A DNA stretch of 64,000 nucleotides from Ascidiella aspersa (Eukaryota). Under the pieces are notes generated by a model. That model ran no database searches. It was not told the DNA's origin and saw only the letters and a program-made list of their open reading frames with translations. Below are positions 1,186-50,200 of the stretch, in pieces; position 1 is the stretch's first letter; each line of letters opens with the position of its first letter. The stretch is taken from positions 14,694,001-14,758,000 of the forward strand of contig OZ004608.1 of NCBI GenBank assembly GCA_963924565.1, written 5' to 3'. A program made the position numbers and the translations under genes.

Positions 1186-4100
1186 TTGCTGAAGATTACT
1201 TTTACGTCTTTGAATTTGTCCTGCATTTCCAGTTATCTGCGGGTGTACGATGGCTACAGAATTGTAAGTAATGTATTTTACACCTTAAAAGGGTCTACAT
1301 ACCCAGCGGTATGTTGCTGTTCAAAATATTTATTGTACCCCTCGCTCTGGCCTTTCTATGAGAACAAAAATTGGAAAAACACGACACGTTGTTTCGGTAG
1401 GAATAGGCAGATCGCCTGATTTTAATGTCGGTTATTCGAAATAGGAATCTAACAACCCTTTAAAGACGCCAACCAATCCTATTCTTTATTAATTATTCAA
1501 CTCTTTAAAAGATTTAGGCCAATTGATAAAAATTCGCTTTGTTTTTGGTATACCTTTAAGATAACTATTATTTTAGTTTAAAAATATATTTCCGAGTAGC
1601 TGGACCAACAGCACTAGATTGTTATTAAAAATTCTAAAAAAGGTCTAAAAATGTGTGTTCTGAATTTTAAAGGACATTAAACAGTGAACCAATAAAATAG
1701 CATAATTTTTTATAATAAATTCTTTTAAATTACACGGCGAAGAAAAATTGTGAAGTTTTTGCTCGAAAACTGTTCGTACATGTGTTTTTACACTATGTTA
1801 ATATTAAAACATTATAAGTTCAAAAAAAAAAAAACAGTTTGTTTTGTAATAAATTCAGTTCGGGGACCGAAACTTCTGCGGAACTGAAAAACCAAGGGAA
1901 TTCGTTTCTTCAGGGGAACTGGTGCGAATCTACCTTTACCGCAACTATTATTACCAAAGTCATGTGCCGCTAGCGAGCTTTCAAATGTTCTGGAATGTGA
2001 CAGGTTTGTCGACAGAAACTTCGGGGAAAACACTAATGTGGGTAACAAGATTTTGGGTAAATTTCTATGTTGGGGTGATAATTGCACCAAGGTATTTTTT
2101 CTTTAATTCAACTTACCCACCATAACCCTATAAACAAATAAAAGCTCTGTATATGTTATTTGGCCCTTAAACACGAAACATAATTGTAATATCACTATAT
2201 GCTGGCAAAACGCGACGTCAGATAGCGTCAAGGGTAGACATTTGTGTAACATCGCCGAAGATTTTGTGCGATCCAAAAAAAATAAAAAAGAATTTGTGCG
2301 AAGCAACCATAAATAATCTGTTTATAATTCTATAATATAATAATATTTCTATTCGAAAGAAATGTTATAATGTAAAACTCTAAACAGGAATCCTAAAACT
2401 GACTTTGGCGTCAAGTAATAACCAAACCAAACTTTTATTCTTTGGTTTAGCAATATTTTTTGGTAAACCAAAGTCGTAACGTGCTTCGAAACCTATTATT
2501 TCTATCTGTTCTTATTCCTGTCCAATTATTACCTGTTCTTATTCATGGTGTTTTCCGTTACTGCTGGGTAATTCCGGTGGGTGTGTTACACTGACGTCAA
2601 TAGGGTAGTGGAATTTTTTTGGAAACGTCCTACGTAACCACAAAAAACAAGCGAAACAGATCCAGATCAGTGCTCTTCAGCCCTTTTCTCGTTGTATGTA
2701 GCCCACGTTTAACCGCCTAATAATGACTTTGTATAGCTCACAAACAGCAATCCGTAAAAAAGATGCGTTTGTTTGGACAAAATTAGCCACAACAAACAAA
2801 ACGGTTTTACACAGGATAGAAGGCCGTGCTTTCCCGAAATTGTTCGAAAAAATCCGATATTAATGAATAAGAAATCGTCTTACTGTCGTGATATGCAGTA
2901 ACTTGATTTATTGTATTTCTGCTTTAATACACGACCATGCAACTAACAAAATTTAATTGCGTTTAACAAATCGTGGTATAATACAGAATAAATCAAACTA
3001 AAATGCAAAAAAATGTAGTTTGTGCGCAATTGTAAGCTAATGTTTTAGGATTTAGAGTTTAGACCATTTACTTTATACACCAAATCTTTGTAAAGGTTGC
3101 TTAAGATTCGTACTCTACTAAAAATAGGCTGTAATTGATATTTGTTGCTTTCACGATGACAGTAGGTGTTCCAAGTTTGCCAAACATAATAGTTGGGTAT
3201 TCCTCGATTTTAGACGGGTGTCCGAACAACAATTTTCGCTGCTGGAATGGAATGTGCGTTCATCAAACCAAGCGATGCGATAAGATACGTGACTGTGAAG
3301 ACGACAGCGATGAAATGTCTTGTGGTGAGTTCATGCCAACTGCTAGTTTACTTTGATACTTTTTTTTGATTTTTTAAAAGATTTCAACCGAATCGTATGC
3401 CTAATTCATTTGCAAGTTAAGTGAACACCAAGTTGTTTAACCACTTAAAACATTAGTAAACCCATACTATAAATGACGTTAAATGCAATCCATAAAACAT
3501 TTGTTTTTTAAATTGTACAACTTAATTTAATCACACTCATACAATTGTTGAATAATAAAAACAAACAGGTCGTTCAAATTTTTTTAAAGATCTAATTTAT
3601 TTTCCGTATGTCTTAAAGCACAAAACTCGACATCGTTTGATCAATGTGGTAAAACCCCAGTTGCACCTGGTTTTACCTGGGTAAGCATCTCTATTTGAAC
3701 ATTTTGTTAACTCAATGTTTCGTTTTTTAATAAAGTTGGTTTGTGCAGTGTAGATCTTTACATACTATTTTTTAGGTTTCGTAAATATAATTATCTAGGG
3801 AAATCGGTCTCGTGGTATATAGCTGAATGTTATATAATAATGAACGGTTTTCGCAAATAGGCTACGTAAAAACGTTTTAAGAAACCTCACTTAATTTAGT
3901 TTTTGGTATTGGTAAATTTTGGGTTTTGTGAAGTAAATAGTAAAAAAGGGATTGTTTAAATATACCTTGCAACATTGTTTGGTGCAACAGACTCCAAAAA
4001 TTCTGGGCGGTGACGAGTCGACCTATGGGGCGTGGCCTTGGCAGGTACGAGTTCACCGGGATACGTCATACTACTCACGGCCGGCTTGCGGAGGAACTAT

Positions 4101-47200: not shown

Positions 47201-50200
47201 TTGTCCATTAGGTTTTTTTCAGAGATTTTTCAAAAATCACATGTGTTTTTTTTAATGTTGTTGGATAACTTACTTCATCTTACGAATTAAAACGTTCAAC
47301 ATTATTGCTATTTTTATATAAATTGCATAGAATAACACTAGACATGTTTGAAAACCTCGGGCTCCTGCTAACTCAGTGTTTTTCAACCTTTTTGCTGGAG
47401 TGAAACCCTATGGAAACATTCCACCGGCTCGAGGAACCCCAGTGCAATAGTTTGGTTGTCTTATGCATGCATGCAACCTCAATTAGCTAAACAATTTAGA
47501 AATTGCGGAACCCCTGGACTTACTAGCGGAACCCTAGTTGAAAACCACTGTGTTAACTTGACATTTTCTGATACTCCAGGATCCCCGTATAGTTGGCGGT
47601 AGTCCGGCTCAACCGGGGTCATATCCATGGATGGCGATGTTGTATAAAGATGGAAAGCATGTTTGTGGATCAACCATCATCAACAAGGATACCGTCCTCA
47701 CCGCAGCTCACTGCGTGGCTCAAAAAAACAGCACGTACGTGTTGCTTTGCGTTTCTTACTAGAAGTTTTTCTGCTTGAAGTATTAGCAACATATTTGCGC
47801 CTATTGTCAAAATCCCAAATTTAGTGAAATTGTTATGGTGTTCCGAGCGCTACAAGAGGCGTCCTAAAAACGTATTAAGATGGGCGAATATTCGCATAAC
47901 AACAAAACGGCACCGAATAATAAGCTACCAGTGTCTAAAAATGTCTCAAATGTATAATTGGTGTATCTTCATACTAAATTCACAAATACATGAATTAGTT
48001 TGGTAATGAGGGCAACAAACGGTGTCATAAAATAGTGAATTTCTTTAACATGCTGTACTTTAACTGATATTGTTTGAAGGTATGCTGTCCACGTTGGAAG
48101 GCATTTCACAGAAGGTTCTACTAGCATAAACCAGACTTATTCCGTGACTTCCGTTATTCTCCCAAGTAACTATACTATGTAAGTAAAAGTAAAAAAACAC
48201 TACATTTAGTACTTCCACATCGGTTCATGTAACTGCACATGTGAGTTTAAACGAAACATTTGTTTTTTAGCCCACGAAATGGACAAGATATTGCACTTTT
48301 GAAGCTTGACCGATCTATAATGTTCGAAAAAAATGTTCGTCCCATCTGTCTACCTCCTTCCGGAGTTGGAAAATTCGAGCTCAAGCCAAAACAAAAATGC
48401 ATTGCCACAGGATGGGGAGCGCTCGGTTTAAAACACTCATTGCTTTTCTTTTTGTTTAGAATTATATTAACGACTCGCAACAATGTATAAAATACGGTAG
48501 TTAACATTGTAACACTTTTTCTAACACGAGTCACTTGACTCATTGTTGACCAAAGTTTGACTCAAGTCACTTGTTTAACAGACTTATAAAGTAATTTTGT
48601 CCAACTTAAGTAAAGTCGAGTCAAATAAAACATGGACTTTAGTCATTACAGCCCTGCACAAAGTTTGAAAATCATCCTCTATATTTAACAAAAGCCAACA
48701 AAAAATGGCATTTTCAGAATTAAAAACATGAAGAGACCAAATACTTTACTAGCTTGAATTAGGGTAAATTATATGTTTAAGAATAAAAAGCCACGGGTAA
48801 AAGGTTTCGACGAATTTTAATAGCAGGTGCTGTCGTTGCCATTTAAAGCGAGCATTTTTTTACCAAATAGAATATGGTTCTCCGTCTTTGGCTAGCGAGT
48901 TGTACCAAGTGCGCTTGTCAATTCTCGACCGTGAGGTATGCAACAAAAGTTACGCAAGCGCGCCGACTCCTGCTTTCCTATACAACTCACAAATATGCGC
49001 AGGAAGTATGTCAGGAGGGTTCGACACTTGCCAGGTAAACGCAATCCGTTTTATCTATAAACCAGTGTTTCAAAACATAACGTGCGCGTAGGTCAACTTT
49101 TTTAAAAACCTCACCGCATATGGGCAAAGTGTGGTGCGTCGATAATATAGATTTCCAATTAGTTTTTATTTATTCGCCTTCAAATAAAATATAGAAATAC
49201 AACAGCAATTGCTATATAAAGTAGGCTAGATAGTTTGACAGGTTAGCACTATAATTATAAATCAATCTGAACTCTCAGCTTTTTTAGGTAATTTATAGTA
49301 CAACCTATATGGAAATAATTCATATATTACAAAGTTGTACTTAACAAATTGTAAATTTTTCTGTCGGCCTATGAAGGGCGATTCCGGTGGACCTTTGGTG
49401 TGTTTATTTGGTGCAAACACGTGGTATCAAGTGGGGATAACATCGTACGGCTACGGTTGCGGAGATCCAAAATATCCTGGTATTTATACCAAAGTTTCCT
49501 ACTACTATCATTGGATCGCTCAACGTGAGTTTCGTCTAATCTGTTTAAATTTTGCTTTTGATGAGCTGGTTTCCAATTAGCATTCTAGCAAACAGTGCAA
49601 AGCAAACTAGTTTAATCGCGAAAACAGTATCAACAACTTTTATTCGCTACAATTTAATACAGACTTTATTCAAAGTACACAACCGGTATCATTTCCTTAT
49701 CTGTGATTCAAATATTTGTGTATTACTTTATTTGATTATAAATTTTGCTTATAAATGTGTATTATTTTTCAGAACTAAACGAAACTTTACCAACTGGGCC
49801 ACCTCCAGGTAACTGTTTTTGTCTACTTTTACTTCAATATAAACTCAAAACGAAGTAGAAATTTCTTATATTAATCCTCTTTAGTCACAAGGGCTTCAAC
49901 CGATGTGACATCCATAAATCCAACGACAAACTCGGTCAATTCGGAAACACCCAGTAAGGAATTTCCTATTTTCGTATATTTCTTTAGAATAGATTGATAC
50001 TGTAGATCAGTGGTCAGCAAACTGTAAGCCGCGTCTTTAATGTGGGCCTTTGATCAATCTTAAGTGTGCTGCGAGTCAGTTGTTTTTATTTGAGTTTTAT
50101 CATGTAATTGTGGGCCACGTGAAAGTGCATTTATTGTACTGTATTTTAAAATTTTGTGTGAGAAAGAGTTTTTATTTTGGTTCATTGTCCATAGGTGTCT

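Follow-up and report, generated by a model that had tools for sequence, protein, structure and literature searches.

Chains that carry many protease domains are widespread in database annotation, with up to 14 domains in one library match (P0001), and have been little studied. A stretch of 64,000 nucleotides from the sea squirt Ascidiella aspersa (GenBank assembly GCA_963924565.1, contig OZ004608.1, positions 14,694,001 to 14,758,000 of the forward strand; here called the window, with positions counted from its first base) offers a clean natural case for two questions about such chains: whether several zymogens tethered in one chain are self-activating, and why activation sites persist in pseudoproteases. 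We consider it likely that the window holds one multi-exon tunicate gene for a secreted mosaic polyprotease of six repeats, which would be held together by disulfides once cut and would probably end in a hydrophobic tail. The zymogen sites and the cysteine pair in each repeat are what a specialist expects of this fold, and a Lys/Arg code that had been proposed for the sites does not hold up. The most valuable observation is that SP1 and SP5, the two of its six serine protease (SP) domains without a complete catalytic triad, retain the full activation apparatus.

Six modules and their activation sites

The window has no runs of N. In six-frame motif scans, CGK..[VI][AP]P matched six times, always on the + strand (3645, 19106, 26324, 32468, 38035 and 46739). 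The motif I[LIV]GG matched seven times on the + strand and never on the − strand; six of these matches are activation junctions (4000, 19591, 26516, 33914, 38209 and 47589), and the seventh (24222) is irrelevant, lying in a reading frame full of stops. There were four GDSGGP matches, those of SP2, SP3, SP4 and SP6, and four [TS]AAHC sites (three TAAHC and one SAAHC). An all-against-all comparison of the open pieces in the window revealed a repeated set of exon types, which form six collinear modules on the + strand, each with one or two CUB domains, an LDLa domain, a 15-residue pro-linker and a trypsin-like domain. This sixfold recurrence of motifs is module duplication, not chance. The Pfam families Trypsin, CUB and Ldl_recept_a matched eight of the ten open reading frame (ORF) pieces, the two unmatched ones being C-terminal CUB pieces; E-values of PF00089 on exon pieces of SP1, SP2 and SP3 ranged from 3e-12 to 5e-7. 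The six protease domains can all be aligned with one another, exon against exon. An LDLa exon stands before each of the six pro-linker exons, with the CUB exon or exons further 5′.

Exon borders were placed manually, guided by AG/GT sites and reading phase, and the domain comparisons were run exon by exon. A pro-linker exon C, followed by exons D, D2, E, F and G, encodes each protease domain. The 35 exons of these types are all bordered by AG and GT, have compatible phases and are free of stops; in module 4, the D-D2 intron of the other five modules is gone, leaving a fused exon. The phases of the CUB/LDLa exons (H 2/0, M 0/0, A 0/1 and B 2/1) can be satisfied in all five inter-module links, with 8330 as the CUB exon acceptor in the link from module 1 to module 2. 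An intron of about 10 kb (8805–18636) splits a CUB domain between SP1 and SP2. Within it, at 11.46–12.72 kb, are 382-base tandem repeats.

The first-pass annotation spanned 3619, the acceptor of the first pro-linker exon, to 48425, the donor of the SP6 exon with Cys122, and claimed that every module keeps an Arg/Lys junction and a Cys1-Cys122 pair. Read exon by exon, both were confirmed in six of six modules. The motif CGKxx[VI][AP]PxFxW is present in all six pro-linkers. In all of them the stretch from Cys1 through P1 is 15 residues long, 12 up to the terminal Trp of exon C and three in exon D, which we take to be the span of chymotrypsinogen numbering.

In module 1, the pro-linker exon (3619–3680; AG/GT borders, phase and motif) has its Cys1 codon at 3645–3647. 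Exon D of SP1 (3991–4154), with a Pfam Trypsin match on its ORF piece, carries the junction TPK|ILGG, with the Lys codon at 3997–3999, and Gly at residue 57 (4132–4134). Exon E (4749–4909) has Asn at residue 102 (4768–4770) and RPVC with the Cys122 codon at 4828–4830, exon F (7169–7362) ends in GSVGICD with Gly at residue 189, and exon G (8108–8252) reads KDWGGP, so that Asp194 is kept and residue 195 is Trp (8114–8116). The other pseudoprotease module, module 5, has its pro-linker exon at 38012–38070 (Cys1 at 38035–38037). Exon D of SP5 (38200–38345) carries NPK|IVGG, with the Lys codon AAG at 38206–38208, and Ser at residue 57 (38329–38331); exon E (39443–39588) keeps Asp102 and has RPAC (Cys122 at 39519–39521). 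Exon F of SP5 (39870–40021) ends in RFAGIDA and lacks Cys191, and the alignment of residue 189 there is ambiguous. Exon G (40374–40518) reads DDEGGP, with Asp194 kept and Glu at residue 195 (40380–40382), and lacks Cys220; one whole disulfide is therefore lost from SP5.

The four remaining modules hold the live domains. Module 2 begins with a pro-linker exon at 19080–19141 (Cys1 at 19106–19108), followed by SP2 exons D (19582–19745; ASR|IIGG, Arg at 19588–19590, His57 at 19720–19722), E (20600–20757; Asp102, RPIC, Cys122 at 20679–20681; Pfam Trypsin on its ORF piece), F (20996–21162; ending GGLSTCH, Ser189) and G (21439–21583; GDSGGP, Ser195 at 21445–21447; Pfam Trypsin). Module 3 has its pro-linker exon at 26298–26359 (Cys1 at 26324–26326) and SP3 exons D (26507–26655; DVR|IVGG, Arg at 26513–26515, His57 at 26642–26644), E (27120–27265; Asp102, RPIC, Cys122 at 27190–27192), F (27905–28059; ending GGIDTCQ, Asp189; Pfam Trypsin) and G (28778–28925; GDSGGP, Ser195 at 28784–28786, with Gly216 and Gly226 in the context SFGYGC...PGVY). 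In module 4 the pro-linker exon (32442–32503; Cys1 at 32468–32470) precedes the fused exon D+D2 of SP4 (33905–34164; DHR|IIGG, Arg at 33911–33913, His57 at 34040–34042), exon E (34402–34553; Asp102, SPIC, Cys122 at 34478–34480), exon F (35720–35874; ending DAQGVCQ, Gly189) and exon G (36231–36381; GDSGGP, Ser195 at 36237–36239). Module 6 consists of a pro-linker exon at 46713–46774 (Cys1 at 46739–46741; RNA depth in its bin) and SP6 exons D (47580–47734; DPR|IVGG, Arg at 47586–47588, His57 at 47709–47711), D2 (48080–48178), E (48271–48425; Asp102, RPIC, Cys122 at 48347–48349), F (48871–49034; ending GGFDTCQ, Asp189; RNA depth in bin 48928–49124) and G (49377–49524; GDSGGP, Ser195 at 49383–49385).

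The triad His57-Asp102-Ser195 is thus complete in SP2, SP3, SP4 and SP6, which by sequence are predicted to be catalytically competent. SP1 (Gly57, Asn102 and Trp195) and SP5 (Ser57, Asp102 and Glu195) have no complete triad and are therefore pseudoproteases. Both dead domains keep Ile16, Gly18-19 and Asp194, the last of which is present in all six domains (GD, KD or DD before residue 195). A trypsin-type pocket with Asp189, Gly216 and Gly226 was found in SP3 and SP6.

Relatives in sea squirts and known systems

With the SP4 exon as query, 21,578 proteins of a 50%-identity protein library matched at E ≤ 0.001. Multi-protease chains stood at the top of the list, and the highest identity was 58%; the window's own protein was not among the matches. 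Four of the 150 best library proteins had the pro-linker signature; they came from Clavelina lepadiformis, Styela clava, Ciona savignyi and a metagenome contig (P0058). Word-indexed protein searches with P0151, P0155 and P0175 as queries added the five-module Clavelina protein P0175, Phallusia mammillata P0182 and a second Ciona savignyi entry, P0208; one of the three queries gave nothing further. In databases, the relatives are named 'transmembrane protease serine 9-like' or 'ST14-like'.

The sea-squirt relatives (Clavelina P0155, P0175 and P0028; Styela P0151, P0153 and P0154; Phallusia P0182; Ciona savignyi P0208) share with this gene the CUB-LDLa-pro-linker-protease repeat, the motif CG[KQTV]xx[VI]xPxFxW three residues before the cut, and a mixture of live and dead domains. 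In Clavelina and Styela, the full-length proteins start with a signal peptide, continue with two to five such repeats and end in a Ser/Thr-rich stretch and a hydrophobic tail. Phallusia P0182, a partial protein, gave reciprocal best matches with modules 4, 5 and 6 (58.5, 46.9 and 57.8% identity, summed over exons), in the same live-dead-live order. For modules 1–3, no counterpart was present in the relatives found. This gene has six modules, compared with two to five in those relatives, and among them it alone has two dead domains and Lys at dead junctions. We place it within the known polyserase and CUB-LDLa protease kinds, as a new and larger member of a sea-squirt branch that has not been described. 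In the literature searched, we found no description of a sea-squirt [CUB-LDLa-SP]n family.

Among solved structures, the best matches of a module of P0028 were enteropeptidase (7wqx_A, E 7e-66) and TMPRSS6 (matriptase-2). The alignment to these chains spans the CUB and LDLa stem, the CGK cysteine, the junction and Cys122. Against 7wqx_A, the CGK cysteine aligned with CGK, the junction with ITPK|IVGG, and the cysteine of 'vCyP' with that of 'iClP', which is Cys122. By this alignment to the TMPRSS6 and enteropeptidase stems and by Pfam, CUB and LDLa domains stand before the protease, as in the stems of type II transmembrane serine proteases. However, enteropeptidase and TMPRSS6 carry only one protease domain in each chain, are held by type II anchors and contain additional SEA, MAM or SRCR domains.

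Polyserase-1 (TMPRSS9), as described in PMC1435904 and PMC4161349, resembles this gene in its several S1A domains per chain, one of them inactive, its LDLa domain, its basic activation motifs and its membrane attachment, which here is predicted. By the description in PMC1435904, it differs in having an N-terminal type II anchor, a single LDLa domain, no CUB domain and three proteases in direct tandem. Here, in contrast, each protease has a CUB-LDLa stem of its own, and the chain has a signal-peptide-like N-terminus and a C-terminal hydrophobic segment, both ends being candidates. We rejected membership in the polyserase-1/TMPRSS9 type II group, given the CUB and LDLa domains before each protease and the failure of our upstream search to find a type II anchor. 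Ovochymases (in Xenopus, and HrOvochymase in Halocynthia) are, as described in PMC9265791, secreted chains of alternating trypsin-like and CUB domains; the last domain of HrOvochymase has no catalytic triad. According to that description they lack LDLa domains and have CUB domains after, not before, each protease. Ovochymase sequences were not the closest relatives in our protein searches, and with an LDLa exon before every pro-linker exon here, this membership was rejected as well.

Tether, activation and the dead domains

The first-pass annotation had also taken it as known that a Cys1-Cys122 disulfide holds the pro-chain after activation, and concluded that six cuts would leave a disulfide-linked chain hanging from the anchor. 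The enteropeptidase alignment of P0028 supports the placing of the two cysteines. Two papers describe the tether itself: in membrane serine proteases, a disulfide between the pro-domain and the catalytic domain keeps the latter attached after activation (PMC4161349), and the polyserase-3 paper argues the same for tandem domains (PMC1435904); PMC7215454 makes no mention of it. The tether reasoning is sound but textbook; it is established knowledge rather than new. For this gene, the disulfide, the cleavage and the anchor are predicted by homology. A cut after Lys/Arg15 would free Ile16, which would be expected to pair with Asp194, in each of the six units. The pro-linker cysteine would be expected to stay bonded to Cys122 after the cut, and the activated protein would be a multi-chain, disulfide-held assembly, not a set of free proteases. 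Because there is one cysteine pair per module, six cuts would leave one such assembly, wherever the anchor sits. In place of the anchor of the original picture there is a candidate C-terminal exon.

Which enzyme would make the cuts? Among the live domains, a trypsin-type pocket is confined to SP3 and SP6 (residue 189 is Ser in SP2 and Gly in SP4), which are hence the only internal candidates for cuts after Lys or Arg. The earlier idea that they could make the cuts is a reasonable suggestion. Cleavage by them at the six basic junctions might occur in cis or in trans, and an outside trypsin-like activator is equally possible.

That an external trypsin-like protease drives activation, with SP3 and SP6 taking no part in the junction cuts of their own chain, is a serious possibility, to which we give somewhat less than an even chance. 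In Styela P0153, the junctions of SP1 and SP3 have Arg, yet the live domains have Ser189 and Gly189; with two Arg junctions and no Asp189 domain in this protein, the family can do without self-activation. Enteropeptidase, which among solved structures is closest to the P0028 module, has the junction ITPK|IVGG and is itself activated by other proteases. Many further family modules on the same chromosome could act in trans. On the other side, at least one live Asp189 domain was found in eight of nine relatives (P0175, P0155, P0028, P0182, P0208, P0151, P0154 and P0058), as in this gene, a distribution that fits, without proving, self- or cross-activation.

In Styela P0151, P0153 and P0154, the middle protease has an intact triad and Val or Leu at P1 (SPV|IIGG, NPL|VIGG and YPL|LVGG). 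These domains would not be activated by a trypsin-like cut. Together with the Arg junctions of P0153, they indicate that in these proteins, at least, proteases from outside or from sibling chains must act.

The modules could also be released as independent proteases by additional cleavage of the linkers, the tether then holding only a short pro-peptide stub. Polyserase-1 is reported to release its domains (PMC1435904), and the long CUB-LDLa linkers leave room for more cuts. We think release unlikely here: no dibasic or second conserved cleavage motif was recognised in the linkers, although no search was aimed at one.

The dead domains raise the second question. SP5 and its Phallusia counterpart are alike at the altered sites (LTSASC and DDEGGP in SP5, LSSASC and GDEGGP in Phallusia). 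The junctions of SP1 and SP5 might be mere relics, uncut or functionless, the dead modules being only spacers or binding domains. The dead domain evolves faster than its neighbours, as its lower identity to Phallusia (46.9%, against 58.5 and 57.8%) shows, and the Cys191-Cys220 pair is gone from SP5; at the matching motifs of the Phallusia counterpart the cysteines are present (GTCYGDEGGP and TTCLSG). In the dead SP1 of the metagenome relative P0058, Ile16 is lost (AFGG), so retention of the activation site is not universal. Nevertheless, we doubt that the junctions are relics. SP1 and SP5 keep Cys1, Lys15, Ile16, Gly18-19, Asp194 and Cys122, and the Phallusia dead domain also keeps CGK, NPR|IVGG, the Asp of GDEGGP and the RPIC motif. 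Insect non-catalytic serine protease homologs are synthesised as precursors and, once cleaved, work as cofactors (PMC10540698). These clip-domain proteins resemble SP1 and SP5 as dead S1A domains switched on by a cut; they differ in having clip domains, in being separate polypeptides and in lineage, and serve as an analogy only. By this analogy, a cleavage-gated, cofactor-like role is possible for SP1 and SP5.

The fullest scheme would be a self-contained ordered cascade, in which SP3 and SP6 cut the pro-linkers in cis by way of the invariant Phe-x-Trp at P6-P4, SP1 and SP5 serve as cleavage-gated non-catalytic switches that acquire a binding or cofactor function only once their own Lys15|Ile16 bond is cut, and the product is one anchored disulfide-held assembly. 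We regard this as quite improbable. Were it true, the conserved activation apparatus of the Phallusia dead domain and the non-basic Styela junctions beside non-trypsin pockets would reflect matched internal protease-junction pairs.

The first-pass annotation also read meaning into the choice between Lys and Arg: Pro-Lys, found at the dead domains, would hint that activation there follows another order or uses another enzyme. Within this gene, Pro-Lys does occur at both dead domains and Arg at all four live ones, a split that arises by chance one time in 15. All 17 family D exons read elsewhere in the genome have Arg and none has Lys; they include the exon at locus L032, which has Gln for His57 (Ser195 was not read for any of the 17). 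The pattern failed against the relatives. The Phallusia counterpart of SP5 is dead yet has NPR|IVGG. In a tally of nine relatives with 28 domains, which left out P0038 (an isoform of the P0151 gene) and P0048 (a shorter entry from the species of P0208), all four dead domains had Arg, as does the His57-less exon L032. The 24 live domains had Arg (20), Leu (2), Val (1) or Lys (1), the Lys being in P0058 (DYK|IVGG). Neither is Pro at P2 special, being common in live family domains (SPR, NPR and DPR, the last in SP6 here), and the live enteropeptidase junction is itself Pro-Lys. SP1 and SP5 are not sister modules; their identity of 34.5% is among the lowest in the matrix, compared with 56.1% between SP3 and SP4. 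A single transition separates AAG, the Lys codon of SP5, from AGG. A Lys code is therefore very unlikely, and Lys at the dead junctions is most simply a conservative change, tolerated by a trypsin-like activator and without special meaning.

Gene ends, transcription and neighbouring loci

No further module exon was found in the 40 kb upstream, where none of 26 exon-piece queries matched by tblastn. About 3 kb before the window is a candidate first exon, with a Met start and a short hydrophobic core; next comes a CUB-start exon, whose acceptor is compatible with the donor of the first. By its sequence, this exon looks like a signal peptide rather than a type II anchor; neither it nor the upstream search gave an N-terminal type II signal anchor. 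At the other end, a candidate terminal exon (54725–54816, + strand) with a pyrimidine tract and CAG acceptor has two leading bases that fit the one trailing base of exon G. It would encode a moderately hydrophobic C-terminal tail and stop (GPI-signal-like or a short membrane anchor), similar to the C-termini of Styela P0038 and P0151. A C-terminal anchor, whether a lipid-anchor signal or a membrane anchor, is a plausible prediction.

Between SP6 and the candidate terminal exon, at 50,100–54,600, a unit of about 2.14 kb is present twice in tandem, the copies being near-identical in every frame (offset 2143–2144 bases). Each copy has Ser/Thr/Pro-rich open pieces, which might be duplicated stalk exons or a plain repeat. 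Open pieces rich in Ser/Thr occur across 49.9–53.7 kb.

Low-level transcription was observed. In about 6% (7,793,684 records) of one Ascidiella aspersa RNA-seq run, mapped to 44200–50090, 28 reads fell within this interval, and the depth lay mostly in bins of predicted module 6 exons; bins 45185–45578, past the predicted CUB-end exon, had a depth of about one read. First mates fell almost exclusively on the − strand, which is what common stranded libraries give for RNA from the + strand. The joint from 47734 to 48080 (GT..AG) was seen in five reads, confirming the donor of SP6 exon D and the acceptor of exon D2 and thus the predicted intron exactly.

Reads of opposite orientation were seen at 47352–47560, just 5′ of SP6 exon D, with loose ends at 47476, 47520, 47526 and 47556 and an A>G difference at 47536 in all four of these reads. 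They are possibly from a repeat or another intronic transcript.

Several points count against the reading as one gene for a disulfide-held six-repeat polyprotease. No full-length six-module ortholog was found in the library or the word-indexed protein searches. Both the 5′ and the 3′ end are models only, and the C-termini of the relatives gave no match to the window by tblastn. Further CUB-start-like exons lie on the + strand at 58267–58563 and, in window-equivalent positions, at 67.6 and 69.0 kb (L007); lying 3′ of the candidate end, they might belong to the following gene or form an alternative 3′ portion, and the gene might continue differently. RNA depth was very low and sampled over module 6 only, with no reads on SP6 exon G or anywhere 3′ of it, the candidate terminal exon included, at the sampled depth. 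To these are added the self-activation that Styela P0153 does not require, the Val and Leu of three Styela domains, and the domain release of polyserase-1, all given above.

That the six modules are instead several adjacent genes or a decaying pseudogene array, as the single RNA-confirmed intron and the 10-kb intron dividing CUB exons between SP1 and SP2 might suggest, is most improbable in view of the stop-free C-to-G exons, the phase pattern conserved through all links, the lack of any recognised signal-peptide or terminal exon between modules (though no search was aimed at these), and the annotation of relatives with two to five modules as single proteins, the Phallusia entry spanning three.

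At the start of the window, positions 1–240 are a short interspersed repeat; a search of the same genome found it in 41 places, 40 of them outside the window, at 80–97% identity and on many contigs. Downstream, a convergent single-module paralog lies on the − strand at window-equivalent 77.8–82.5 and 88.0–89.0 kb (L008-L010), with CUB, LDLa, DPR|IVGG, TAAHC and GDSGGP, and there are further CUB exons beyond it.

About 2 Mb before the window on the same chromosome, the + strand at 12,578,000–12,737,000 holds at least 17 more family modules in about 160 kb (L012, L014-L024, L026-L029 and L032). These include 16 exons of the xxR|IVGG...AAHC type, L032 with Gln for His57 among the loci, and a CGKxxxxPxFxW exon at 13 of the 17 loci; L029 has the pro-linker exon only. 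Three module types seem to recur in order, with a spacing of about 28–45 kb, as would fit a tandem series of three-module genes or else a single giant polyprotease.

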